Shown here: positions 1,075 through 40,600 of the stretch, one piece after another
Layout of the letters: the number at the start of each line of letters is the position of its first letter
Position numbering within the stretch: the first letter of the stretch is position 1
Assembly (NCBI GenBank): GCA_977016875.1
Contig: CDRNST010000176.1
Span: 124,001 to 188,000, forward strand
Direction of reading: 5' to 3'
Origin: Pavona decussata
Taxonomy: Eukaryota
DNA length: 64,000 nt
Position numbers and translations under genes: made by a program
Notes under the pieces: generated by a model
What the model was told of the DNA's origin: nothing
The model's database searches: none
Seen by the model: the letters and a program-made list of their open reading frames with translations, nothing else

Positions 1075-4000
1075 CTCACAGAAGAAGATAGAGCTAAGAT
1101 GCGTCAGTACAGACGTGAGGCAGTAAAATGTGAAGCCAGAATGTTTGAAAGAAGAAGAGAGAAGTACTCCGACTTAATCTTACAAGTCATGTCTGTAATG
1201 GACAGGATTCAGGTAAATCCAGTCAGCCGTACTTTAACCTAATCGTAGCTGTTACAAGTGAGACTGATGTACAATGTTTGTTTTCGAAATTGGCGTACTG
1301 ACACAGTGTTTCAGATAAGAAAGGGGTCTCAGGTCAAAAAACCAACAGAGCTGGCTACCTGACCTGGCAATTGAAATGTTAAACTTAAGAACATTTGGAG
1401 AGACTCATCCCTACTAATCCCTGTAAAGTTCTTCACTCAGACTGCTATAACCCTTTAAGCTGTAATAGTGATCAGTATCAAATTTCTCCTTGTGTTATCA
1501 ATGCTTATTCAACCCCTGACCTTATGAGAATTAAGGATATGATCACCCAAGGTGAATTTTCTTGATATTTCAAAAACTTCTCCCTAGTGCTTTTATAAGA
1601 AAAGTATGGGGACAAGATAGGAGAATTTGTTCCTTGATATTAGGGGTTAAAGGGTTAAGAACTCATTGCAGCCTGTAAGCTTAAATTACATAGTTACAAT
1701 ACAAACTTAAATATAGAAACTATGTATGTATTATAAAGCATCAAATCACAGAGGCTAGAATGAAACTATATTATATATACTACGGTACCTAACAATAATA
1801 TATAATTAAAAACATAATCACAAGAGTTTTAGACTTTTAAAAACTCAAACACATAAAACAACTACCGTATTTACTCGAATAAGCGCCGCGGCGCTTATTT
1901 AATTTTTCGTGTCTCTTGTGCGGCGCTTATTCGAGGGCGGCGCTTATTTGAGGGCGGCGCTTATTAAAAGGCTCATACCACAAAGCCAAAACATTTCGAT
2001 TGTACAAGCAAACGCTGACAATCTCCTTACTGCAACAGTTACAGGGAAGAGAAAGAGGGAGGTTGGGCTTGTCGTACCGGCGAAGTTTACAGCCTTCACG
2101 CAAGAACTGAAGAACGCGAACATTTTGAAGAGAGAACTGAATGAAAGAGCATATTGAGATATACTCACTTCGAACTGAAAAACATCACTATTGATGAAAA
2201 TAAATTCTCATTGCTGGCTTACAACCACATTGCAGCGATTACTGTGTATTTTTATCATCTTATGGAAATACTCAAATAAGCGCCGCACCGGAGCTGCGGC
2301 GCTTATTCGAGGGCGGCGCTTATTAACCATTCCATTCCATGTGCGGCGCTTAATCGAGGGCGGCGCTTATTCGGAGGCGGCGCTTATTCGAGTAAATACG
2401 GTAAATGATTACTTACAACTAGAAAATAATTAATGTCATAAAACACTAGAATAAAATAGAAATGACTGTAAATTATATTATGTATCACTCTCTCTCTCTC
2501 TATATATGCTGCATATGAGTACAAAATGCTTTGAGAGAACTGAATTAATGAGGTATTTCCTGGTCTGGTTATTTCTTCCTGCAGGGCAACATGTGAGGTG
2601 GCATAAATCACTGCCTACTCAAGTTTCAACCAAATTTTATTTCATTTTCTTAGGAACAAAGAGAAGCAGAACATGGACACAATGAAAGTGTAAGAGAGAG
2701 AACTCTCACCAATGAAATTGGTGAAACAAAAGATACCAGCAGAACGTCATATGAACCTGATCACAGAAGGCAAACTTGGGATGTTCCTATGGGTGGAAGA
2801 AATTCAAAACAGGAACAGTTTACAAATTCCTTTCCAGATTGGACTGAAAAACAGGGCGACCAATCCAAGAGAGTTGATAGCCAGATGAGTTATTTACCAA
2901 ATTCGGATGAGTCAATGCTTGTCACCTCTGATGAAAGGAGAATACTCAAACACCAGTTTACAGGACAAGTGGATTCTAGGGAACAAACTCGAAGAGTGCC
3001 ACTGGGATTTGTGGGTCCAGATCTTCCTCTTAGCTCTACAATTGATAAAGATGCTTCTGATTTAAAGAGGCCATTTCCACAAGGGCTTTCTGTTGCTTCA
3101 AATGGAATGTTCTCAGATAGCACATTAGACGCAACTCAGAGGAACAAATCACTGTCATTTCAGCAAGATAGGAAAGGTTTGGAGTATGACTCTCTGGCAT
3201 CTACTTCGTTGTCTGTGGCTTTTTCAGGTGAGTGAGTGAGTTTAGCATGAACATGTGATCATCAGAAATTCAGTTCTTGTGAGGTGCTAACCTACAATCA
3301 TGCCCAATTTGGTACAGTGCTCTTGTTTCCTTTTATATGATTGGTCACTTGCTAAAATCAGACCAGGTAGAATCTTCCATAAGACCTTGTGCCAGCGGCC
3401 AATTTAGTGTGGCCATGGGAATCACATATTAAATTAGAAGAATTTCAACATTTTGGCAACCTGGGCCATACTGTCTCCATTGTAAAGTTAACTGGAATGG
3501 TTTTATTGTTAGTTACATCCCATGATTCATTGTATCTGTCAGCTGAGTTAAAAACACTAACTGTTAGCCAGATTGAAAGTTATGTAAATGGATATTTTAC
3601 AGAATTTGTGGTTTCTTCACAGATTCTAGTAATGCTACACTGTATTCAGTGATAGAAACAGAGCCAAGATCAACTGTTCAACAACAAGCTCACCCGCAAT
3701 CAGGAACAAATGATACCTATAATGGAGATTGTTATGAACAGCAAGCATCTACAGCTCAATTGAAAACTCCTCAGACCAATACAAGGTCTATGTCCACAAA
3801 ACAAAAGCATGAACAGCAAAGACCAAAATCTGCTAGACTGTCAAAGGGACCTCCATTGTCAGACCAAGACAAGACCTTGGCAAATTTGGAAAAACTGAGA
3901 CAAAAGCTTCTTGAAGAGAAGCAAAAGCACTTCGATGCTCTGAAGCAACAAGAGCTTAAAAGACTTCGAAAACAACAGAAAGAGGTACCAGTGGAGTTAG

Positions 4001-7000
4001 ATCAGTCTTACACTTCTTCTCACTGCATTACTCATACACACACAACTGAGAGGCCTCGCTCTAGCTCCACACCTTCAACAAGGACTTTAGACTTCAAACA
4101 ATCACCTGGAAATAGCCGGGTGATTGGCAGGTCATCACCTCTCCGCAGGCCTCTTTCAATGCCGCCCGGTGAAATGTACTCAATTCTTGAGCTCAGTGGG
4201 GAGAGTCTTGAATTTGATGCACATGACCATAGCACTGAACCTGAATCATCCTCCGATAAAGAGAACCATATTATGAATGGAGATTTGAGCATGAACAAGA
4301 GTAATGCTTTCTCCAGGAATGTTGCAGTGAGAATAAACAATGGACAAAACATGCATTTAAGCTCCTCTCAAAGGAGTGACTACAAGACCTCTACAATTCC
4401 AAGAGAAGGTTTTAAGGTATAGCCCTTATATTTAAAATATATCAAAATTAATTTACCTTTGGTCAACACTCACAATAATTGGACCTGATGCCTTAACAGC
4501 TGTCATGTATAATAAATATTACATGGGCATGTGGCATTTACTTACAGTATTTACATATACAATGTAGACTGATTGACAAGTTAGACTGAGTTAATTTCAT
4601 TTGCAGTATATGCTTCAAACTAAAAAAAGAACTGTTGTCAGGTGTGGAATGCAAACCATAAACACTGTGTGACTCAGCAGAATAATGTCACAAACTAGAA
4701 TAATTAGGGTGGCCAGGATGGAATAAAATGTCAAGTCAAGTCCTCTGGAATTAATGGTATTCAACATACAAGATTCAGTGTTCCAGTTGCTGGTGAAATG
4801 ACCATCTTCTTCACTATCTCAGCCAGCTACTCTGCTTGGCACTTGTTTGCAAAGCATATCATTGTTTGGTTAGCCATCTACTTTTTATTAGAACTTTCTG
4901 ACAACCCTGAGTTTACAGTACCACTCAAAAGTAAGTTACCACACTCTCACGAGACGTGATTCTCGTCTTGAGAGACGAGACAACCTTCTCACGAGAGCCT
5001 CTAAAAACTGTAAGTACGAAGCTTCATCCTCTTGCGACATAGAACATGAGCCTTAAAAGGGACAAAAATCATTTCATGTTTCAATCAAAGATTATGTAAA
5101 TTTCACACAAAACCCATTGCTGACTTCATCTGGATTTTATAAAACCTGGAAAAATGCTACAGTGCGGTGAACATTGTTTTCAAATGTTGATTTACTTTTT
5201 GACTACTGTTTTACTGATCAGTTGAACCAAAATCCTATAACTTTTGTGATTTCCTTCATAAAGCCGTTTCAACTTTGATCGACCGATTCTTTCAACCAAG
5301 CTGAAGTGTCTGCAAGAATTACATGGCCTAGCCCTCGTCTCTCGAGAAACGAGACGTGACTGGCCAGTAACTTACTTTCGAGCGGTACTGTACCAAACTA
5401 TATTCCATTGCCAGCCAGTTACTTTTAAAAGACAGCCATTGTAGTTAGTACAATGGTGTACTTTAGAATTTTTCCGACAACCCAAAGATAATTCAACAAA
5501 GGTCTTATACCTGACAATATCGCTGCAACTGTTGTTCATGCCCAAGGTTCTCTCCTTCCTCAAAAGGTTTTTAGAGTATCGATATAGACATTTACTAAAA
5601 GTATGATAAACACTTCTTATAATGCACTGTACCTGTTTCCCATACTTAACCACCAGGTCACTTTCTTTTTGCATTGGCCATAAAAGCCAGAACTTGCATC
5701 TTGTAAGCGAGTTGTAAAGAGCCTCATGGTATTGACATTTTTTGTAGTTTTTTGCGAGTAATGGAAGAGACAAATTTGCCAAACTCTCTGCACATGCTAA
5801 AGGATTTCTGACAAGGCTGTTGATGAAAACAGACAAAGTGCAAGGCTTGGTTAAGACAATTAAGGTAAGCAGTTTAGCTTGACAGTATATTTTGTATTAG
5901 AAAATGAACACTCTGTCTCGAGGAGATGAGAGTTTATCTCATCATCATCATTATCATTGTCATCACGATCATCGTCCTTCCAGCTGTCGTCACCGTCATC
6001 ATCTTCATCATCATTGTTACCATCATTATAATAATCCTAGTGGCACTCCTCTTTGTACAGGAGGCCTTTTGGAAAAAGATGGTCCTGTTGGAAGATGTTC
6101 TTTAAGTAAAGGAATTTTATCCACAGCGCAATGTTGTTGGCGGAGGTTTAGAGGTCATTATTGTTGAGCATGTCAGACTTTCAACCTAAAAAGTTGTTGC
6201 TTTTTTTATGAGTCATGCTCACTGTTGTGGTGCCGTGTTCTTAGACAAGAAACTTCACCCCATGTTGTATTTCTTCATTTCGATGTGCACTGGATTAACA
6301 TAGCCTCAAACTGATTGTGAAAACTTAAAATATGCTTTGAGCAACCTTGTGTTTGTCTGTATAGTGTCCCATCTTAGATGCTTTAAAGAAAATACACTAT
6401 TTTGTTTTGGCAGTCAAGGCAAGCTTAAACCACCAGTCTGCTTACTGAGAAGTCAGACATGCTAACTTCAAATACATGTTTCCTTGGAGAGGAAGGGACA
6501 GAGGGAGGGTGGGAGAAAAAGGGTGAAGTTAACAAGTTGTGCTTTCATTTAACAGGACACCAGAGATGTTCTAGAGGATATGTCAAAAGAGGACACACAG
6601 ACCGTGCAGGAAAAAATGTTGAAAGAAAATGTGAAGAGTCATGTATGTATTTAACAAAATTTAATAATTGTTAAGCAGTCGCATTGTGTACATGTATTTT
6701 TCAGTAAGTGGCAGAGGCATATGTGGGAAAAGAAAATCTGAGTCCTCCCAACAGGAGTCAAACCTATGACCTTACGATTACTTGTTCAGATGCCCTATCA
6801 CTGGGTGCAGGTCAGGAGACTCGTGGGAGCTAGGCCATTAAACTACTGGTTCAAAAAGCTATTTCTGCTATTTTCTATTTAACCATAAATTATGTGAATC
6901 TCAATCTCAATACTTTGGAAGTGTATAATTATTAAAGAACTTTACAATTTATTGTAAGCTTGAACAGGGGCTCTCCCCGTAAAGCCCCAAAGGGTTTACT

Positions 7001-11779: not shown

Positions 11780-12652
11780 GCGACCTCCTGTCACCGTTAC
11801 CTATACTTTCTACATGAGGAGTACAGGCGCTCATTACGCTATGATTCATTCTCAAGCGAGTGGGAGACATTTTGGAATGGAGTGCAGATAAAAATTAAAT
11901 TGTGTATGTGTTAGAAATGAAGATAATATTTACGTCTTGATGTGTGAATATGGTACATCTTGCCCCGGCTGTGTTTGTGTGCATCCTAGTGGAGTCTACT
12001 CACCTTGTGGCAAAAGACATCTTTCCTATCTCGTGAAATACACACCTGAATCAAACTCTTGGGAATATATATCATCATGTGACATGGGTTTGAGGTTTGA
12101 AATTTGTGCTTGGCCAAAAACAATTTTATTTATTTTCTTGGTGGTTCAAAAAAAGAGGGTGACCAATACAGTCATCAATACACAGCCCTAACTGATGCTG
12201 ACAGGTATGACCTTGGTACAAACACATGGAACAGAATAGCTGACCTTCAGGAGCTCAAAAGGCATGCTTGCGGCAATGAGGCACTATATCTTGTGAAGTG
12301 TACCATGAAACAACAAATGAATGGCAGTTTATAGCAAGGCCAAAGATGGTAAACAACTTGACGTGTTTGTGTGTTGATGACAAGTTCTATTTAGTAAAAC
12401 GTTTTATTTCCAGCAAAGGAAACCCAAATCAACAGGACAGTATTATTGAATACTATGACCCTGGTAAGAATGAATGGCATGAGCCTGAACACTCCAGTAC
12501 CTTTGAAATGGAACAACGATGTACTGAGTGTAGACTACAACAAAATTACTTTTGCTTGTTTAATGAGAGTGTTTAAAGGATCAAAATTCCTTCAGCAAGT
12601 CTCAATCCCAAAAGACCATTCAGAAGCTGGCAAGAAATGTGTGATCATGTGA
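11780..12652 (+). pseudogene. Kelch-repeat (KLHL-like) pseudogene fragment with C-terminal CaaX box
   Basis: Kelch motifs spread over different frames: RYDSFSSEW, KYTPESNSWEYIS, FIYFLGG..DADRYDLGTNTWNRIADLQ, YHETTNEWQFIA, IEYYDPGKNEW; ends GKKCVIM*. Several frameshifts, no BTB/BACK domain, no introns; AATAAA at ~12705. Confidence 0.8.
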
Positions 12653-13040
12653 ACTGACATTAGAGGAATTAGTTCTGTTAGCTGTCAATCCAGCCAAATT
12701 TAGAATAAAATTGTGTTCACTAGCTTGTTTTATTCCTAGACATTGCACAATCAACTGAGACAACTTCTAAAGTACAATCAAAATTGTGAAGGTTTAAACT
12801 CTGTGGGAGGAGCTCAGCAACCACGTGTATGGCATTTGACTTGTTTGAAGAATTCTTCATCTAAAAAAAAGAAAAAAAAACCCTTCCTGCAGCCACAAAA
12901 TAATCTGGATCAAAATTAATGCCCTCATTTTGGGTGATTATTTTCATCGTCATCTAAAAGTATATATGCTGTACAGGGGCGGGGGAGAACACTCCATAGC
13001 GCCTGGCACTTTTTTTGTATCTGAATCATCCAACAAAAGT

Positions 13041-13080
13041 TGACGTCACATCCGGTCCGAAAATGAGCTTGGCGGGAAAA
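13041..13080 (+). promoter_or_regulatory. Putative promoter: CRE palindrome and E2F site ahead of a GTAAGT donor
   Basis: TGACGTCA at 13041-13048; TTGGCGGGAAAA at 13069-13080; consensus donor CG|GTAAGT at 13112/13113. Confidence 0.45.
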
Positions 13081-13324
13081 TCAAGATTCACCGCGACAGT
13101 TTCGTTCGTTCGGTAAGTAAAATGGCAATATTTTTTTAATCCTCTTCATTTTTTTTCCTTTGGTTTCGTCATGTTGAAGACAAATATGTTTTCTGTTCCC
13201 ACACTTCGTTAGTTAAATGAATACGCTAAATAAGTATTCAAAACCTGTTGTTTTGGAGGCGTCTTCTTTCTGAAAAATGTCTGCGTTTCTCTCCCCTGAA
13301 GGGTTACGCAAATAAGTTAAAAGA

Positions 13325-15336
13325 ATGAGTTCAAGGTGAGTTTCCTTTTATTTAAATAACCTATCCTGAAAAGTAAGCATTCTACTACAAGTAAGGCACA
13401 AAAAGTATGTTCGAGATGTGGGAGAACCCCATTATCACTCGACGTTTTTGTCGCCAACTGTTCAACAAATCGAGTTTATTTAGTATACCTTTGAGTCTTG
13501 CATAACTTTTATAGCTTGCGCCCGAGACGTAAATACTAATATTTATAGTATTTCTTCGCTCATTGCCACTGACAAATATACATTTAACCTCTTTTATTTT
13601 TTTAAATATATAAAAAAACCTCTTTTAAGCTCAATAGAGTTAGGTGCCTCCTTTTTTTTTCGGTTAACGAAATGGATTTTTTTTCCTAAAAAACCAACAA
13701 CTGTAGGTTCGAAGAACAGCCGCTGCAGCCTAAACGCAGGCATGGAAAAGCCTTGGAAATGGCAAGGATATCAGACGTGTGTAGAGAGGACAAGAAGGTA
13801 ATTCTTGTTGGTGATTCAATCACAAAAATTTTGGAAAGGTATGGTTCAACTTATTCCACCTACTTTCTTGCTTCTACAGTGGTGAATGCCGGTATTCCTG
13901 GAGACACCGTGGAAGCAATTCTTTACAGAGCCCTCAACATGCCTTTCCCTTCATCTGTTACTGACATCTCCCTTCTCTGTGGAACTGAAAACCTTTCTTC
14001 TACAGCAGCAGCAACCATTTCTGCAACTGTCATGGAAATTTTATTTATTCTTCACCAAAAATGCCCAACTGCTTCTATTCACCTCTTTCCAATTTTGCCC
14101 CGATTCGATAATTATCAGTCTCAAGTGCGCGTAGGTAACTCACTTATTAATTTTCAGGTCAAAGAAGCCTTTTCAGACAGTGTTTTCCTCCATGATTTGC
14201 CGTCGTCCCTGTACAACAGGAATGTGTACAGGGATGACAATATACACCTAACTAACAATGGCAATGATATCCTTGTCAGATGGATCCACTTCTGCATGAA
14301 AACTTCACCTGTTCCTCAACCTAAGCCTGACCTTCCCCCAGCTGCCACCGACTTTTCAAGTGCTAATGCTGATTGGCCTCCCTTACCCTCATCCACCCCA
14401 AAACCGAGTCTGTTTCTTCATTCCAGTTCAAAATCTAACCCTCCCAGTTCTAACCCCAACCGTCCCAGTTCAAAACTTATCCCCATCCGTCCCAGTTCTA
14501 ACCCCACCCATCCCAGTTCAAAATCTAGCCCCACCCATCCAAGTTCTAACCCCACCCATTCCAGATCAAAACTTAACCCCACCCGTCCCAGTTCTAACCC
14601 CACCCATCCCAGTTCAAAATCTAACCCCACCCATCCCAGTTCTAACCCCAACCGTCCCAGTTCAAAACTTAACCCCATCCGTCCCAGTTCTAACCCCACC
14701 CATCCCAGTTCAAAATCTAACCCCACCCGTCCCTGTTCAAAATCTAACCCCATCCGTCCCATTTCTAACCCCACCCATCCCAGTTCAAAATCTAACCCCA
14801 TCCCTACCCAACCCAGTTCAAAACCTAGCCCCACCCATCCCAGTCCCAAACCTTGTCCTACCCTGCACCCCAGTTTGAACCCCAGCACTATTCTACTTAA
14901 TCCAAAACCTCACCATAATCAACCATCTCCAACGCCTAGCCCTCAACAGCCAAGCCATGCTTCACCTAGTCCAAAATCTGCCCATACTCAACCCAGTCCA
15001 AAACCAAACCTGATTGATGCAACGCCTAAACCCTGCTCAACTAAATCCAGTCCGAAACCCACCCCCACTCAACCTAGATCAAAACATCACTCAAAAAGAC
15101 CCCCAACAAAACCCATATCAAAAGACAGCCCTACTGAACCTAGTTCAATTCCTGATGGAATCCAACCTAGTACAGAACCTGGGCCCACAAATCCCAGTGC
15201 AACGCCAAGCTCTTCGCAACCTGATGCCAGTCTAGCCGGTCCTTCTCGGTTACACTTTTCCATGTCAAAATTGTTTTGCATATATTTGCAGATATGCTTT
15301 CCTTTTTATGTTCTGATTGTTTTAGCAGAATTTTAG
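13325..15336 (+). CDS. SGNH/GDSL hydrolase (PAF-acetylhydrolase Ib-like esterase domain) with Pro/Ser-rich repeat stalk and hydrophobic C-terminus
   Basis: 527-aa ORF 13753-15336 has SGNH blocks VILVGDSI, NAGIPGDT, LLCGTEN, ILPR, DNIHL. It extends in frame to an acceptor at 13706/13707. Two phase-2-compatible upstream starts: ATG 13325 (exon 13302-13335, MSSR|FEEQ..) or ATG 13063 (exon ending 13112). Confidence 0.72.
14425..14885 (+). repeat. Coding minisatellite, mixed 21- and 27-nt units encoding NPT(H/R)PSS(KS)
   Basis: Repeated AACCCCACCCATCCCAGTTCT / ...CCCAGTTCAAAATCT units within the SGNH ORF. Confidence 0.9.
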
Positions 15337-15733
15337 CCCCTGGTCTGAGCAAGCAAAAATTCTTATTGGCTCCTTATCATCTGCGATAAGTGACCGACTT
15401 TCCCGATAGAGAGATATCGCCTAGTTGCAGTTTTTCCCTTTTAGTTTTTCTTTTCTCTTATTCACTTTTCCTTGCAGTTTTCCGATTTTCTTTTTCTTTT
15501 TTCCTGGGATGGGAGCCTGGGGAAGTGATGAAAGAAGTTGTCGGTTTCATTGCTCCCGGGAAACAAATCCTGCGTTCTGATTGGTCAGCGACAACCGCGT
15601 TCGTGTAGTGAACTAATCTTTCAAACTGTGAAATGTGTGTGTGGTTTTGTTGGAGGAAATGTCGGCTTTATTTGCCCGTTTTTTCTCGTTTCTGGATTGA
15701 TCTGGTGCACTAAAGGTTCTCATTGCACACAGC

Positions 15734-18700
15734 ATGGCTACTAAGCATACCAACTCTCTGGAATTGAGCGATTTTGAGCACCTTCGCAAAGAGAACGCCG
15801 TTCTTCGCGACGAGTTAACACACTTGCGTGAAGAAATTTCCGGCGAAAGACGCACTCACGAGCAAATGTTGAAAAGTTTTCAAGCTTGTCACAACGAAGA
15901 TACGAGGAAAGTAAGAGAGGAGAAGAAACTCACATCGAAGTTGGCAGAGGAGAACGGGGAGCTACGCTTGGAGTTGAAAGAGCTCAGGAAGCGCGCTTCG
16001 GTTGGTTTATCAACTCGAGATCGCGAGAAATTGAAACCAGACCAGGCTGATCTTGGCGCTCGTTTGCTAAATGAGCTTACTGGTTTGGGACAAAGGCTTG
16101 GTACGTTACACAGCGATTTATTATCAAGTCCTGTTGCGAGAAGCTTCAACGGAAAGCATTCTGCAAGTCACGGTGAGATCGGAATTTCTAATCTCAGTGA
16201 GTAATAATCTAGTTTAGATATGCTCGCGCGCACTGGTATTATCCATGTTTATTGATGCTGTAGAATCAGGTTATCCGTAACAGTTAAGGAGCAGATTATA
16301 GTAGATGAGACCAGTGTTGTAGCAGTGGATGGAAAAAATATTTGTGTACATTTAACTGATTCGAAAGGAATTATTTTAATCCGAGAAAATATTCAATTAA
16401 TAGCGGAAGGTTTGATTTAGTAATTTCGTCCGAATGATTCGAATAGAATGTTGACATTCCATATTCTTTCGGAAAACAATCGATTAACAATGCTAAGCTG
16501 CCCTGAAAGATCTCTAAAGTTGAGTTTTTGCTTTGTTTAGAACATGAGGGTTTCTCTTAACAAAAATTAAAATAAATTTGGTGCAAAAATCGTTTTACAT
16601 CTTCCTCCTCAAAGGCTGGTTTGTTGATCGTAGAGATGTCCGTGTGTAAATGGCTATTTTCTGAAGTTGCATGTATATTATGCTATTACGTACATAATTC
16701 AAGTGTTTTTGTCTGTATGGGCCTTTGTGGTGATTGGAGCTGTCTGTTTCGTGTTTAGTTTTGCTTCTGATTAACTCTCTTAAGTGTTCCATTAAGAGAA
16801 ATTTAATTATCCCAGATGTGATAAATTCAAATTAAACTAGGTTTGGAATGCGATGTTTTTCTGTAATTGTTTGTTTTCCTTGGGCAGGCAACATTATTTT
16901 TCTGGGAACATGATACAATCAATAATTTAGTTCACAGACTGTAAAATGATTTGTGGTTAGTGCAGTGGGTGATAATTGCCTTGTGATCACAAACTGTGAA
17001 AAGTCAAATGGCCCCAACTCATGGTAGCTTTTAATAATTAATTGTCATAATCCAAAAGAGTTATTTTTGTAGAAAGCCTGATCTGCATCAGAAAACTAGC
17101 TAACACCAGGAAGCTAAGGGTAAACATAGAATTTTGAGTGCAGTTTGGGAGAAATTGAATTTTTGTCACATATTTTATCATTGCAAGTCCCTGTTGTACC
17201 ATAGAAAATTACACAAGGAAAGTACTTGTCTATCAAAATGGATCACTCTCTCATGGCAGAAACTTCAAGTACAACAGACAGCTTTTATTGTTAACAGTCC
17301 AATTGGTGCCAGAAAGATCTAAGTTCACAATGTATAAACTACACCTTAATGGACATCCCATCACATGGGCTCCTTATTATCAACCCTCTCGCAGTGTACT
17401 GGCAGCTGCTGAGTGGTGATTTTGGTGCTTAGTTACCGCTGCTTTCGACTTACTAAGGGCCTGACTACTCGGCGAATTTCAACCCGGGCTAAAAGTTTGG
17501 CTTGGTTGGGAAGTTGAGATTATGCAGTTCCAGATAAATCCAACCCCCCCCCCCCCCCCTTCATCCATGGAACGTCATCGTTATCATCCTAGGAGAAGGG
17601 GAGTCTTAGAAGCCAAAGTTTTAGAAGCAAAGTATGAAGCTAAACTTGAATTTCCTGGGGGAGGGGGGATGCAAAACAAAAAACCTTTCGTGGGGAGAGT
17701 GTGGATATTTTCTGGAACTGCACATTTATGATGAATTTCTGCCTTGGCACAATTGAAATTTTTGTTGGGTAAAATCAAATCAAGATAAATTGTTTATTGA
17801 ATTCACATTGATTTTGCACGGCAGCCCAAATTCACTTTTTTGCCCGGGGTTAGATTTGACAGTATTTACTTGAGATTTTTCAGCCCGTTTGACCGGTGCT
17901 GAAAGTTCCAGCCCTGTTTGAGCTGGAACTTTCACACTGGGCTGAGTTCCGATCCAGCCTGGAACTTTCTTCATTTAATATTATTACAAATTCTTTTCTA
18001 AGAGGATTTGTTAACAATTAAAGCCAGAGTGAATTTCAGCCTCGCTGAAATTTGCCATGTAATCATTTAGCCCCAATAAAACAGTTTGAGATGGCTGACT
18101 AATTGAAAAATTCTCATAAGCATTCTGAAGCATTCATAAATGTTTGAAACTATTTGCTTTAAGTTACTGCAGCTGATCTTCAGTTGTCTTCCTTTCTTAT
18201 TTTTAGTTTTGGTGACCTTCTGATGCTGCCAGGAGCTTATTATCATAAAGCCAAGCCTCATACAGTGTATTTGTGCAGTGGCATTTTCACAAGCTTTTAA
18301 GATAACAAGTTTTTCACAAGTTTTTTTTTATGATAAGCTTTTCTTAAGAAAACTGCTATAGCTGTTCTTTGCAAAACCAAATACAGAGATTACTGTTTGA
18401 AATAGTTTTAGAATACTCTTTTAAAGGAAATTCCTGTCCTTCGCCAACCATGTTTAGTACACTTGTATGTCCCACATGGAAGAGTGACCAGTTTTGAAAA
18501 TATTTTGCCAAGCTATTTATGTGCGATTTTCTTTGATTGGTTATTCAAAACCAATCGTGGGAAAGATTGATCAATCCAATAATCACCAAACCTGTGAAAG
18601 TGCCATTTCACTGACAAAACTTATAGAAGTTGAATGTCCCAAGTATCACAAATATTGAGCGGGAGGGAGTTCCAGTAGCACAAATTAAAAGTTAATATGG

Positions 18701-20056
18701 TTGTGATCTGGGCTATAGCATGACTTTTGTTTTTAACTGGTCTCCTGCACTCAGCCTGGAATGGGTGCATTTTTTTTTCTGTTTTGGATCACTCAAGATT
18801 TTCATATCTGGAAAAGAACTAAGAATGATCAAATTTCTGTAAACTGAAAATAACACTGCTCATTTTGTAGAGGATGCAGCGGCAGTCAAAGAGCACTTTA
18901 AGAAACTCAGTGCTGAACTGGTGAGTTTGAGATCCCTGCTGACAGCAAAATCAGGCATTGGACTGAATGGAATTCTACTTACGGATCACAGAGAAGGTAA
19001 AAACTTATCAAGAATCCATTGCATTCTTGGTAGCCTCAATAAGTATTATATATACCTTTTACCAACCAAGTTTAAGGTCCGTACTGAAAGTGATGGACCC
19101 AGTTTTTTCCCATTGATTTAAGGCCCAGGCACGAAGCACATGGGCCGTAAATCAATGGGAAAAACAAGGATCCGTAACTTACAGTATGAACCGAGAAAAC
19201 AAGTTCAGTAAGATATTTATTTTATCTCTGAGGTTAATTGGGTGCGCACTAAAGGAAAACTTTCAAATTGACCAATCACACTGCATGTACTAACTGAGAG
19301 ATGTAATAAACAGGAAGAAAGAAATAGATCAAATACAACATAACATGGTTTAGAATCCTGCTGGCAGGAGGTGGACCAGCTAGCTATAAGTGCGGGAGAG
19401 GGGTTGAATTCTGGACCACAGAGAACTCTAGGTGAACCTGGGACCTCTGAATTACAAGTCTGATGCCCTAACCACCTGGCCACGCTGCTTCAAACATAGA
19501 ACACAAAAAGACCACCAACCTTTCCTAATAACAACAGTGTACATGTACATTAAGCACCCCAGTATCTAGACTATGAGGGGAGAATGGTAACTGCGCCAGG
19601 GATCCAAATCTTCAGCGCAAGTACCTCTTCTCTGCTGATATGTTTGTAGCTTTAAGTTTCTGCCTCTGTTCTCTGTCTTCTCGACATTACAGAAACGTTG
19701 TTTTTCTTGTCTAGATAGTGCAAAGGAAGGGGAGAGGGCTTGGGGACTGAACATCCTTTTTCCTGAATCCTTTGGTACTGTGTTCACTCCCCTTAATTAG
19801 TTTTAAAACCTACTAGTGCAAAGGAAGGGGAGAGGGCTTGGGGACTGAACATCCTTTTTCCTGAATCCTTTGCTACTGTGTTCACTCCCCTTAATTAGTT
19901 TTAAAAACTAGCTTTTTAATTTTTATTCATAATTATTGTAATGTGTAAATAAATTTATGTCTGTTCTTTGTAGCAAAAAGTTTTGTAATTAGAAAGTGCT
20001 TAATGGGTTAAATGGAATTAGCACTATGATTAGTATCATAAATTATTATTATTATA

Positions 20057-37600: not shown

Positions 37601-40600
37601 TCGGCCGAGAATGTTTAATAAAGGTCTTGGTCAGGGTAATTTTAGGCCCCGTACGAAAACTAGTTCGGATAAATTTGAAAACAGCGTTTCGCCTCAAAAC
37701 GTATCCAAGTGTTTTGCGTCCACATATCATTTTCGTATCGTTTGTGCCGTTCACACTGAAACACATCCTCGCTCCTAGAAAGGCTAACTACACAGTAGAC
37801 TGAGCATGCGCACATAACCGTTGTGGTGTCTTCGTTTTCACCGTTTCCACCAAAACACCTGGCTAATGTTTTTAAATTTATTCATTATGGAGAGTGTTTT
37901 TCAAAAAGATCCGTTTTAACTGGAGGGGAGGGAGGAAGATATGTTTTCAAATTTACTAAAATAGATTGGCCTCATCTACTTGCTTAAATAACAGCTGGGT
38001 TTTATTTTTTGCATTCGACGTAGAAAGAATGCAATCCTAATACAGATTGGATTCGAGATTCTATGGGACAACGTTGATTGAATGAATGGATATTGGGACC
38101 CTTATCTGGCATCCCCCGCAGATTTTGCAGGGGCGGGTGACATCATCACCAACTTGGTAAAGGAGAGAGAGTCTGGGATCGAAATCATGGAGGACGCTCC
38201 TTAATCTTTGATCATTACAAGTTTATTTATTTCGCCATACAAATTTTGGCTCAGTTTACATTTCCCTTATATGTCATTTTTATGACAGTGAAGTAGTCAA
38301 GCAAGAGTTGGAGAATCTTTATGATGGCCGTCACGTGAACGCTGCTGTGACGATCCAGTCCTGGGTGAGAAGATGGATCTGCCGCAAGAGATGGCCTAAC
38401 CTCAAACGATCGCTTGAAATGCAAAAAAAAGGCCGACACAGCAGCAAAGTGAACCACAAGTAAGGAGAACTGAATAGCAACTTGATCAGATAAGGGAGTA
38501 AGCTCCGTAACAAATTGTGGTGTTTCGCTGCTGGAGGAGCGAAAACGAATGTTTGATTTTATCAGTCAACGTAACAAGGTTCGAAAGCTGGCGCTTCGAG
38601 CGCTCACCCATTGTCAGTCGAATTCAGACGAGAAGAGACCTTTGAAGAGACATTTGTTGTGTTAGATATTACCAAAGATTGATTCAGGCGCTAAAAATCG
38701 TTTGTGCGCCAGTGCTACGCGGCATCAACTTTTCGGACAATATTGTTGGGCTAAAAATCGTCGAATCGTCGTGTCTGACATCGGCTTTTATAAAGCAACA
38801 GGCTCCAAGAACGTGATTGATGTGAAAAGTGATAATCCGAATCATGCCCAGTAGGTTTGAAAAGTTGCACTCCGAGTTCTATGTGAAGTTTTAGTATTTT
38901 TCTTTCGAATTTGGTATATTTAGATAGGGGAGACTGCACATATGTAGCTACATCTCTTGTTTTATCTTCCGTCAATGTTGAGCTATGGGGCTAAATTCTG
39001 TTAGCATCAGGGAAAGGTCTACGGCTCCGAATAAGCTAACCGTCCAAGATTAAGAATTGTTCAACAACATGTCCGAAACTTTGAAAACTTGTTTCTATTT
39101 TCTCATTTCCGATAGTTTATGTATGCATGTATCGAGATTCGGCCTTCCTCTATCGTTTTTTTTTTCCTTTTTTTATCCGCAGCCATGTTCGTAGATCGAT
39201 ATCACCATCGGATGAGCTTCGTGTGGACACGAAAACAGCCGACCAGAATTGCTGTTTGTACGGACTGGACATGGTAAGTGGGACCTTATAGCACTCGGGT
39301 TCGGATTCCTGCAAACGTAGTTTATTCATTAAACAGAGGGCTTGGTTGAGTGTTTTGAAACTCCTGTACTTTGTTGCCTTGAGAAAAGTGAATGTAGCAA
39401 AATTTTTGTTTTGTTTTTTATTAATTGTTTTTAATTGCAATCTCAAGACAACAACAACAATGGCTAACAATACATTACTTTCAAGGTTACAATTTGTTAT
39501 TTTAACTGGAAAGCCATTTAGACTACACCATACAACACGCCTCAAATCAGTTTGAACACTACTCCTTGGGTTCTCCCAGGGAGCCATATTTAAGTATCGA
39601 GGGCAACTGATATCACTGGCAGATACTTTAGACTAACACTTGGCTCGCTTCAGTCTGTAACTGTGAAGTAATAGGCCATTTCCGAGTTTGCTGTGAACCT
39701 CATGAAAGCGAAGCTAAGCGCAAAGCTTTTCATATGGAAATTAGTTTTGTTGGCATATGAATGAAAACTAATTTTCATAATAAAAACTTTGCACTTAGCC
39801 TCGCCTTCATAGTGAAGTTCAAAGCAACTCGGAAATGGCGTTTTTATGTGCGTCCCATTTTTGTGGTCATTTTTGCAGGAAACACCACCGCCTCTGCCTA
39901 AAAGCCGGCCATACACTGTGATGGGTAACATGAAGATGGGATTCCCACAGACTCGTATCATGAAGTTCGATTTTCCAGGTTAGCATTATCAAAAAGTAGC
40001 CTGTTCCATATCTCAGACAGTGATTTCTTTCATTTTCGCGGTTTAGCCGTACTTTCTGAGAGCCAACCAGGCTGCCAAGTAGTGATCACGTGATACCTGA
40101 TCAACATCTCATTTCTCCTTTTCTGGGAAAGCAGTCCATCACAGGATACCCAGCTTGAAGCGACTAGAAGTATTACTTTTAAATCCGGAATGGGATAGTA
40201 GCCCACCGCATCAGACACGGTTCACAGTCCCCTATTTTTTCCATGGGATTTTCGAGACTTGTACGCTTCCATTGAACTCCGCCATCCTGGTTTGTAAAGG
40301 CGAGCGCAACCTGGGGTGAGGCTCCCCTCAGTAGTTTAGACACTCTCCCCAGGTTGCGCTCGCCATTAGAAACAAAGATGGCGGGAATTCGATCGAAGCG
40401 TACGAGTCTCGAAAATCCCACGGAAAAACAGGGGACTGTGTCTGTGAACAGTCTACCCATCACAGGATACCCAGCATGAAGTCAGTAGAAGAATAACTGC
40501 TCCCTCCGGGATGAGATGTTGGGCCACGGCTGGGCTGCCCTCGGACCTCTATAAAGTTTCCCGAGCAATTTACCGCTCACCCATTGATGCAGCTGTTTGG

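Follow-up and report, generated by a model that had tools for sequence, protein, structure and literature searches.

The segment from 12974 to 15342 of the window (the whole 64-kb stretch of DNA analysed here) is probably a 3'-truncated and immobile copy of an esterase-carrying subfamily of hAT-like transposons. The esterase unit is present in the genome in six copies: the one in the window, four large paralogs (C80, C142, C6 and C287) with 77-93% DNA identity to it, and a deletion derivative of 572 bp (C257, L042 6441-7012). Every copy starts at the identical transposon tip, and the same junction between terminus and esterase region is found in C6, C142, C80, C287 and C257. The alignment of copies and of their boundaries, proposed as a check in an earlier note made from the letters of the window, returned a multicopy unit whose left edge is a transposon terminus and whose window copy is cut at 15331; the orphan single-copy host gene considered in that note falls with the six copies, while its alternative, a truncated mobile ORF, stands.

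Features of the esterase unit, in positions of the window
Feature	Position	Strand	Basis
Left terminus: 11-nt tip CAGGGGCGGGG and subterminal sequence with CRE-like TGACGTCA (13041-13048)	12974-13057	+	repeat identity
Putative exon 1, non-coding or short upstream ORF	13063-13112	+	donor conserved in C80, C142 and C287; E2F-like GGCGGGAAA at 13071-13079
Putative exon 2, with the sole in-phase ATG (13325)	13302-13335	+	phase, translation, donor conservation
Start of putative exon 3: PAF-AH Ib-like SGNH esterase domain	13707-14319	+	profile, AF2 model, Foldseek
Pro/Ser-rich low-complexity stalk	14320-15270	+	composition, Tandem Repeats Finder
Hydrophobic segment and stop; last two codons and stop derived from the truncation junction	15271-15336	+	comparison with C6 and C142
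Truncation junction	15331-15332	.	paralog homology ends at 15331; single-copy host DNA beyond
GCCCCTG, probable remnant of the extreme right tip (family end ...CCCCGCCCCTG)	15336-15342	+	position after the break

More than 10 genomic copies match the 84 nt from 12974 at 100% identity, some 30 further ones do so at 98-99%, and a 36-mer of this left terminus has 60 matches in the genome at no more than two mismatches. Because the upstream flanks of all copies are unrelated, the repeat begins exactly at 12974; since a search of 12000-16500 against Rfam gave no match, it is not a known small RNA gene. Genome-wide, 60 left and 75 right ends of this young repeat family were counted, with 0 for the control patterns. 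The termini of the family are CAGGGGCGGGG...CCCCGCCCCTG, an 11-nt inverted tip, and three full high-copy elements (L035-L037) combine these tips with subterminal inverted repeats of 0.7-1.5 kb and perfect 8-bp target duplications (CGGCAGAC, GGATAGAC and (C)TTGTCGAC). Paired ends imply long elements, for example of about 12.5 kb on C70 at 656566-669053 and of 11.3 kb on C382 at 121352-132662, with another on C248 at 599214-608547. Short inverted tips starting with CAGGG occur in hAT elements, as in Ac, and the tip of this family fits the hAT terminal consensus (YARNG type). Since the 8-bp target duplications and the CAGGG tip are the only features to which the "hAT" label refers, we call the family hAT-like. 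A transposase for these termini was looked for in the three full high-copy elements, which have no ORF longer than 150 aa, and among the best 150 of at least 150 genome matches to the hAT dimerisation domain (PF05699), none of which falls within any element that could be mapped from both of its ends. In this coral-like genome the hAT-like family has many copies and was active recently.

The esterase copies end in different ways on the right. The C257 derivative consists of 257 nt of the left region of the esterase subfamily joined to a canonical right end, and has a 7/8 target duplication (GCTCCATA/CCTCCATA). Near the five large esterase copies a recognisable right end was found in no case (0/5). 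C6 and C142 stop at one and the same base, each against another mobile element, and this shared end could be the real 3' boundary of the esterase unit, of a kind not recognised by us; the ORFs beyond the unit in C142 belong to no Pfam family. The one-ended state of these copies counts against the preferred reading, as do the shared end of C6 and C142, the outcome of the transposase search and the missing target duplication of the window copy.

In the window the DNA after the break (15332-16100) is single-copy, and the earlier observation that no RT or endonuclease lies downstream of the ORF was confirmed. On the + strand of the window the heptamer GCCCCTG has a single occurrence, 5 nt past the break in homology, with a chance of about 1e-3 of doing so, and by its sequence and position it is probably what remains of the right tip. 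The flanks of the window copy, ATGCTGTA and GTCTGAGC, are unlike each other in an 8-bp comparison, so that no target duplication is seen, and neither a long inverted repeat nor a second terminus was found within the window. The inverted pair CAGGGGC (12974) and GCCCCTG had been noted before as weak evidence for mobility; the pair and its want of a target duplication were found again, but its weight had been set too low, the left member being an exact transposon tip.

Reading and translation confirm an ORF that stays open from 13708 up to a stop codon at 15334-15336, and it is the only open frame among the six copies, all four large paralogs being frameshifted or interrupted by stops. The esterase gene probably has three exons. 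The donor of putative exon 1 (GTAAGT) begins at 13113 and that of putative exon 2 (GTGAGT) at 13336; the GT/AG signals are canonical and are retained in C80, C142 and C287, the exon 2 donor is kept in every copy still holding that stretch, and the window acceptor of putative exon 2 carries a 7-nt deletion relative to the paralogs with its AG still present. The acceptor region, however, shows homology as well to N-terminal coding sequence in relatives from other assemblies. Phase arithmetic and translation give ATG 13325, in exon 2, as the only in-phase start, which after splicing of 13335 to 13707 would yield a protein of 546 aa. The two small upstream exons had been described as being in compatible phase; this is right for exon 2 and its ATG, but the ATG at 13063 in putative exon 1 runs, once spliced, into a TAA within exon 2. 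The CRE and E2F motifs upstream were located again, and an N-terminus without hydrophobic stretch agrees with the reported absence of a signal peptide. The protein searches described below used exon 3 alone, the joined spliced reading having served only for the phase check.

The domain encoded at the start of exon 3 is predicted to have the three-layer alpha/beta/alpha fold of SGNH esterases. Its AF2 model (pLDDT 84.6, pTM 0.83) has PAF-AH Ib structures as all of the top ten Foldseek matches (TM 0.72-0.80, best 0.79-0.80, probability 1.00), and the family profile searched against the PDB finds the catalytic subunits of PAF-AH Ib at E=2e-25. Pfam Lipase_GDSL_2 (PF13472) matches the window domain at E=3e-5 (24.9 bits, below the gathering cut-off of 32.9) and 11 out of 11 aligned members at E<=1e-3, the best at 6.8e-16. 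The SGNH-esterase reading of the earlier note was thereby sustained both by the profile and by structure prediction, which it had suggested as a check, with PAF-AH Ib as the closest relative. Block I (VGDS, with GDS at 13810-13818) contains a Ser invariant in the 11-sequence alignment, which aligns with Ser48 of PAF-AH alpha2; in block II (NAGIPGD, 13885-13905) G62 and G65 are conserved or invariant in the same alignment, and the Asp and His of block V (DDNIH, 14233-14247) align to the DxxH of the relatives and of PAF-AH. The catalytic Ser and DxxH, already read as intact from the sequence, are therefore in place. Block III reads GTEN (13981-13992), with a Glu at the position of the oxyanion Asn (13987-13989). 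This unusual block had been pointed out correctly, but is not a trait of the family: GTNN is present in 10/10 aligned relatives as well as in C80 and C142, and the window alone has the change from N to E, a replacement of AAC by GAA requiring two base changes in one codon. The decayed copy C6, among three paralogs checked, has the Lys codon AAA at this position. The alignment indicates that loss of the oxyanion Asn to Glu is specific to the window copy and that the family retains the Asn.

The stalk, estimated previously at about 300 aa rich in Pro, Ser and Thr, measures 316 aa and is composed of 25% Pro, 23% Ser (together 48%) and 8% Thr. It opens with the conserved motif DWPPLP (14371-14388). 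Tandem Repeats Finder places a 48/96-nt tandem repeat at 14438-14786, weaker up to 14863, an array which has grown to about 5.7 kb in copy C142. Relatives in other assemblies include 34 proteins of about 60% identity, some of them also with the DWPxLP motif and a Pro-rich tail, and one cluster at 90% identity comprises 110 members spread over many contigs, a distribution typical of a repeat. Other esterase loci of the same genome are 24-44% identical to the window esterase. The C36 esterase was considered as a retroelement relative and set aside, since it is single-copy, has a strong GDSL match and is probably an ordinary host gene.

After the stalk the window protein ends in a hydrophobic segment (15271-15333) reading ...VLIVLAEF followed by the stop, whereas C6 and C142 read ...VLIVLAESQT... 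and go on through another hydrophobic segment to a stop some 40 codons later. In the window copy the break at 15331, where single-copy DNA takes over, has produced the ...AEF stop and cost the protein these roughly 40 codons. The comparison of copies shows the window terminus to be an artefact of truncation, the ancestral ORF having continued through the second hydrophobic segment. Of the tail anchor supposed earlier, the hydrophobic segment itself holds, while the terminus that made it a tail anchor is a product of the truncation.

Selection on the esterase, another of the checks named beforehand, was estimated from dN/dS, which is 0.35 between the window and C80 and 0.25 between the window and C142, well below 1. 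From these values between copies we conclude that the esterase was under selection in the transposing lineage. On the window lineage itself 10 synonymous and 15 non-synonymous changes were counted. That cargo carried by a non-autonomous element should be under purifying selection runs counter to expectation, unless the esterase is of use to the element or to the host, and this too weighs against the preferred reading. The wider proposal that a coral hAT-like lineage keeps an intron-containing, PAF-AH-like stalked esterase gene under purifying selection is tentative, and we consider it rather doubtful.

According to the explanation we prefer, a low-copy subfamily of a hAT-like cut-and-paste transposon would bear an esterase gene just inside its left end. 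The ancestral product would be a PAF-AH Ib-like SGNH esterase followed by a Pro/Ser repeat stalk and two hydrophobic C-terminal segments, transcribed presumably from the transposon end with its CRE and E2F motifs. The esterase may serve the element, or may have served it in the past, as functional cargo or as an accessory protein; if it resembles the esterases of CR1/L2 ORF1p and of Ngaro, its expected role would be that of a membrane-tethered lipid deacylase. On this view the copy in the window would be a relic of recent origin, with its ORF still open but devoid of the oxyanion Asn, of the last 40 or so codons and of a usable right end, and may have arisen through aberrant transposition or through a deletion after insertion.

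Two other explanations leave the left terminus as a hAT-like end and differ in what the esterase is. One is that esterase and repeat form the 5' module of an "esterase-first" Ngaro/DIRS-type element, which would have inserted inside the hAT-like left end and spread with it. An SGNH ORF is on record for Ngaro elements (PMC9210276). In C6 another element lies 13 nt beyond the unit and reads in the same direction; it contains a CCHC gag-like ORF, a fragment of an RT and an ORF with an ALOG domain, which is the kind of DNA-binding domain that recombinases of the DIRS type have. This downstream element, however, has a 5' boundary of its own (c6o position 4693), at which another copy, on C20, starts with unrelated DNA upstream and with its own 5' region repeated at its 3' end; for these reasons it was rejected as a part of the esterase unit and was kept only as the basis of this rival. 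C142 ends at the same base as C6, but there a different and very abundant repeat comes next. RT/RNase H and YR ORFs are absent from 12974-15342 and from the single-copy DNA after it, and were seen only beside C6 in the element with its own boundary; around the unit neither split direct repeats nor inverted terminal repeats with an internal complementary region were found, and the terminus family makes target duplications. Conserved candidate introns would be unusual for a retrotransposed module, and identity of the window esterase to the other esterase loci of the genome is low, as given above. We regard a Ngaro/DIRS origin as unlikely. Quite unlikely too is a co-option of the window copy, in which the promoter of the transposon end and the proposed splicing would produce a tail-anchored esterase-like host protein; with its oxyanion Glu this might act as a non-catalytic binding protein. 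The sole open frame among six copies, the conserved canonical splice signals together with the in-phase ATG 13325, and the mainly synonymous differences among paralogs in codons 13708-13758, upstream of the internal ATG, all speak for it, and the two-base change of the Asn codon could reflect selection for a new role. Yet the youth of the copy, whose 84-nt terminus is unchanged from the family majority sequence, explains the open frame equally well, the C-terminus is an accidental product of the junction, and the changes specific to the window, with 15 non-synonymous against 10 synonymous, are less constrained than the average between copies.

A 3'-truncated ORF1-type esterase of a CR1/L2/RTE-X LINE or of a Penelope-like element, the vehicle named in the earlier note, is very improbable and already largely refuted. 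The terminus belongs to a DNA transposon with inverted tips and 8-bp duplications. LINE copies are truncated at their 5' end and not at their 3' end, but the esterase copies share an exact 5' end, which is the tip of a duplication-making transposon, and differ in their 3' ends. No copy runs into an endonuclease/RT ORF of its own, and the only LINE seen is a nested insertion in C6 on the opposite strand. The weak profile match to the zebrafish L2 ORF1p esterase (4c1b, E=4e-3) and the occurrence of such esterases in cnidarians (PMC3905857) would favour a LINE. The best relatives in structure and in sequence are, however, the subunits of PAF-AH Ib, with an E-value lower by 20 orders of magnitude.

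The truncated hAT-like copy that remains the preferred reading can be compared with several known systems. With PAF-AH Ib alpha1/alpha2 (PDB 1wab, 1fxw, 1vyh and 3dt6) the window domain shares the SGNH fold, as modelled, and the GDS Ser, the block II Gly and the Asp-x-x-His at the same positions; it differs in its sequence (about 18-21% identity), in the Glu in place of the PAF-AH oxyanion Asn (the first of the two Asn in GTNN, by residue count on the alignment), and in having a 316-aa stalk, a hydrophobic C-terminus and a transposon as its carrier.

The esterase domain of CR1/L2-type LINE ORF1p was reportedly described by Kapitonov and Jurka in 2003. SGNH esterases occur in the ORF1p of CR1, RTEX and Penelope elements, and those of the CR1/L2 type have been proposed to act on lipids and membranes (PMC3905857). 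ORF1p of this type (ZfL2-1, PDB 4c1b), with cnidarian examples too, is like the window protein a mobile-element SGNH esterase. The window unit lacks, unlike these, a coiled coil, an RRM and an ORF2, its carrier is a DNA transposon with target duplications, and a link to membranes would come from hydrophobic helices on the stalk instead of a basic surface. Ngaro tyrosine-recombinase retrotransposons have an SGNH-hydrolase ORF, according to Goodwin & Poulter 2004 as cited in PMC9210276; it is likewise an accessory ORF of a mobile element, and a putative related element adjoins copy C6. In frog Ngaro elements (PMC9210276) this ORF comes after the YR, whereas the unit in the window begins with a terminus that has inverted tips and makes target duplications, and it contains neither an RT nor a YR. 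In fish the texim SGNH hydrolase genes have been captured and mobilised by Helitrons (PMC4021074). They resemble the present case in being PAF-AH/CR1-related, intron-containing (candidate introns here), multicopy and borne by a DNA transposon, and differ in the phylum, in the rolling-circle Helitron as opposed to a hAT-like cut-and-paste carrier, and in that no stalk or hydrophobic tail is described for texim. Typical hAT elements (Ac/Ds, hobo, Hermes and Tol2) have in common with our family the 8-bp duplications, short inverted tips, internally deleted derivatives and one-ended "fractured" copies, while its 0.7-1.5 kb of subterminal inverted repeat is not usual in that superfamily. A hAT-borne esterase was not found in the literature searched.

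SGNH esterases are recurrent and unexplained passengers of animal mobile elements, among them LINE ORF1p, Ngaro and the Helitron-borne texim. To these the case described here contributes a hAT-like carrier of the cut-and-paste type, a sign of selection on the esterase, and a layout of esterase, stalk and hydrophobic anchor which is shared with relatives elsewhere. In annotation of this genome, masking the ORF as cargo of a transposon is advised over listing it as a novel coral gene. An active and intact member of the family, if found, would offer a simple system for the role of the esterase, excision and insertion being easy to assay. If a hAT-like lineage does keep such a gene under purifying selection, cut-and-paste transposons would be a further independent class of SGNH-esterase carriers beside CR1/L2/RTE-X, Penelope-like, Ngaro and Helitron texim elements, and this would hint at a lipid or membrane step that mobile elements of widely differing kinds have in common.

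The esterase unit at 12974-15342 holds a real ORF, which in our reading of the sequence comparisons is fairly likely to be carried as cargo by a hAT-like transposon rather than to be an orphan host gene. Translation of the window recovered the catalytic motifs GDS and DDNIH named in the earlier note and, behind the esterase domain, a stalk of 316 aa (about 300 had been claimed; Pro 25%, Ser 23%), which a 48/96-nt tandem repeat (14438-14786) encodes in part. The frame is terminated by the hydrophobic segment LFCIYLQICFPFYVLIVLAEF, also described there. The CRE-like and E2F-like motifs and the CAGGGGC/GCCCCTG pair lie where that note had placed them.

Open frame of the esterase unit and its motifs in the window
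Feature	Position	Strand	Basis or location
Long open frame	13708-15336	+	reading and translation
GDS	13810-13818	+	within first 204 codons of ORF
NAGIPGD	13885-13905	+	within first 204 codons
GTEN	13981-13992	+	within first 204 codons
DDNIH	14233-14247	+	within first 204 codons

Two upstream exons had been proposed to be in phase, and the phase check upheld the ATG of exon 2 but not that of exon 1. ATG 13063 meets a TAA in exon 2 once 13112/13302 is spliced, and ATG 13325 with splice 13335/13707 is the only in-phase start of the spliced model (546 aa); the internal ATG 13759 would likewise yield the entire catalytic domain. The ORF of relatives continues upstream of the putative acceptor of the window (...FFSGKPNKYRFGEQ...), where the window in the same frame reads FFS*KTNNCRFEEQ, so that the acceptor region is decayed ancestral coding sequence. 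In the comparison of paralogs 13708-13758 is still coding-like, which together with the decayed acceptor fits, but does not prove, the putative spliced model starting in exon 2. The protein searches covered exon 3.

Dozens of other genome sites match the 84-nt left terminus of the unit (12974-13057) at 98-100%, and a 36-mer of this terminus occurs 60 times at up to two mismatches (reversed control pattern, 0). Alignment of ten sites shows that similarity starts exactly at CAGGGGC, the upstream DNA being unrelated. In this high-copy family three full elements were read (L035 201-5789, L036 201-8149 and L037 201-7691, on contigs C172, C64 and C8); their right ends are ...CCCCGCCCCTG, the left tip inverted, and each lies between perfect direct duplications of 8 bp (CGGCAGAC, GGATAGAC, TTGTCGAC). 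Inward from the 11-nt inverted tip of the family come about 27 nt specific to the end, followed by subterminal inverted repeats 0.7-1.5 kb in length. As the three complete members contain no long ORFs they are non-autonomous. The family is young and has 60 left and 75 right ends genome-wide. An 8-bp duplication and a CAGGG tip are the signature of hAT elements, and the family is therefore called hAT-like. No transposase could be tied to these termini, since among the best 150 PF05699 genome matches none fell inside mapped elements. A further place listed for the family is C176:216342-223788, outside the window.

Other features of the window include short kelch-repeat-like ORFs directly upstream of the transposon copy (12104-12576) and a near-palindrome at 19076-19192 (52-nt arms, 81% complementary, 13 nt apart), a candidate small foldback or MITE. 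A second CAGGGGCGGG word at 38128 (CAGGGGCGGGTGACATC...) stops agreeing with the family terminus after 10 nt and is probably unrelated to it.

A search of the 602-Mb genome found four further large esterase copies, on contigs C80, C142, C6 and C287, with 77-93% DNA identity to the window over putative exons, introns and ORF, all four broken by frameshifts or stops. In all esterase copies the 84-nt end passes into esterase-specific sequence at the same junction. Copy count and boundary alignment speak for multicopy transposon cargo, against the orphan host gene considered in the earlier note, whose alternative of a truncated mobile ORF agrees with a left edge that is the transposon tip and with homology to paralogs ending at 15331. 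A 572-bp element on C257 (L042 6441-7012) joins 257 nt from the left region of the esterase subfamily (terminus, exon 1, part of intron 1) to about 310 nt from the canonical right end, between flanks GCTCCATA/CCTCCATA; it derives by deletion from a complete element that carried the esterase and moved by standard transposition.

None of the five large copies has a right end nearby. The C6 and C142 copies share 341 nt beyond the break at 15331, and their frame continues for about 40 more codons, which include a second hydrophobic segment, before its stop; in the window (...AEF*) the last two codons and the stop derive from the truncation junction. DNA past 15331 is single-copy up to the next gene, which begins at 15734 (ATG), and includes a T-rich 33-nt tandem repeat of 2.3 copies at 15431-15505. 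GCCCCTG (15336-15342), 5 nt past the break, equals the final 7 nt of the family right tip; the + strand of the whole window contains it only here (chance about 1e-3), and it is a probable remnant of that tip. As previously reported, no target duplication surrounds the pair (ATGCTGTA versus GTCTGAGC), so the copy is not the product of an ordinary insertion that later lost internal sequence alone.

An origin of the unit as a nested Ngaro-type retroelement module seems to us improbable. It draws on the C6 copy, where the unit end is followed after 13 nt, in the same orientation, by an element that combines a CCHC (gag-like) ORF with an RT fragment and an ALOG-domain ORF; within this element a LINE with a 972-aa APE+RT ORF is nested on the opposite strand. 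However, the element has a 5' boundary of its own, at which a deleted copy on C20 begins with unrelated DNA upstream; in that C20 copy the 5' region recurs at the 3' end. The C142 unit stops at the same base as that of C6, yet adjoins a different, very abundant repeat. For these reasons the C6 element was set aside as a neighbouring insertion. This low-copy retroelement (C6:4572001-4585300, L043 and L040; C20:5942941-5948849, L048 and L050) also has a CRE/TATA-like 5' region. The repeat adjoining the C142 copy (C142:1423900-1424893; L044 7900-8893, minus strand; 1152 first-look candidates) has a terminus that starts AGCGGAGCTC and is followed by a GC-rich palindrome; many copies are a unit of about 199 nt with 91-94% identity, always preceded by AT.

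Returning to the transposon-borne esterase, Pfam gave a Lipase_GDSL_2 match to the window sequence below threshold (24.9 bits vs 32.9). With the window and ten relatives as its input, a family profile matched PAF-acetylhydrolase Ib catalytic subunits at E=2e-25 and the L2 ORF1p esterase of zebrafish at E=4e-3, and the AlphaFold2 model (pLDDT 84.6) matched PAF-AH Ib structures at TM 0.79-0.80. By alignment the oxyanion-hole residue is the first Asn of GTNN, counted as Asn105 of PAF-AH alpha2; the equivalent in ZfL2-1 is named N195 (PMC3905857). It is kept in all aligned relatives and in the C80 and C142 copies, the decayed C6 copy has AAA (Lys), and in the window two base changes (AAC to GAA) have replaced it by Glu. 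Profile, model and conserved Asn thus point to a family of genuine PAF-AH-like esterases, of whose four defining residues the window copy lacks one. This copy is best described as a truncated, apparently catalytically compromised relic, and is probably silent.

Its 84-nt terminus shows zero differences from the high-copy family majority sequence, the termini of the paralogs being 88-95% identical, which suggests that it is the youngest esterase copy; its open frame is attributed to this youth. Esterase-domain dN/dS between window and copies is 0.35 (C80) and 0.25 (C142), and because neutral decay of dead copies contributes part of this divergence, the ratios suggest that purifying selection must have acted on the esterase within the transposing lineage. 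The window's own branch, with 10 synonymous and 15 non-synonymous changes, points to some constraint, weaker than between copies. In the C142 copy (C142:1425250-1430966; L039 about 1249-6962, minus strand) the 48-nt Pro/Ser-coding minisatellite has grown to about 5.7 kb, whereas that of the window measures about 0.4 kb. The family also includes an older pseudogene (C241:250148-250654; L046 4135-4730), about 44% identical, which likewise has a Pro/Ser-rich tail and a 55-nt repeat, indicating that the esterase-plus-stalk layout is old in this genome. A single-copy 239-aa SGNH esterase ORF (C36:2947218-2947934; L045 4219-4938; Pfam E=7e-16), with only 25-31% identity to the window esterase, is probably an ordinary host PAF-AH-like gene.

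A word-based protein search (ENA, Logan, NCBI assemblies) returned 34 related proteins, none with a name, whose identity over the domain is for the most part about 60%. Among those sampled, a DWPxLP motif and a Pro-rich tail are present in the longer proteins. A single cluster at 90% identity comprises 110 members from many contigs, the pattern of a repeat. SGNH esterases are known from ORF1p of CR1/L2, RTE-X and Penelope elements, with a proposed lipid and membrane role (PMC3905857), from Ngaro elements (PMC9210276) and from texim, a PAF-AH-related gene captured by Helitrons in fish (PMC4021074). The literature search found neither a hAT-type esterase carrier nor the esterase-stalk-hydrophobic anchor layout. 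The carrier class and the selection signal make this case a modestly interesting variation on the established theme of transposon-borne esterases.
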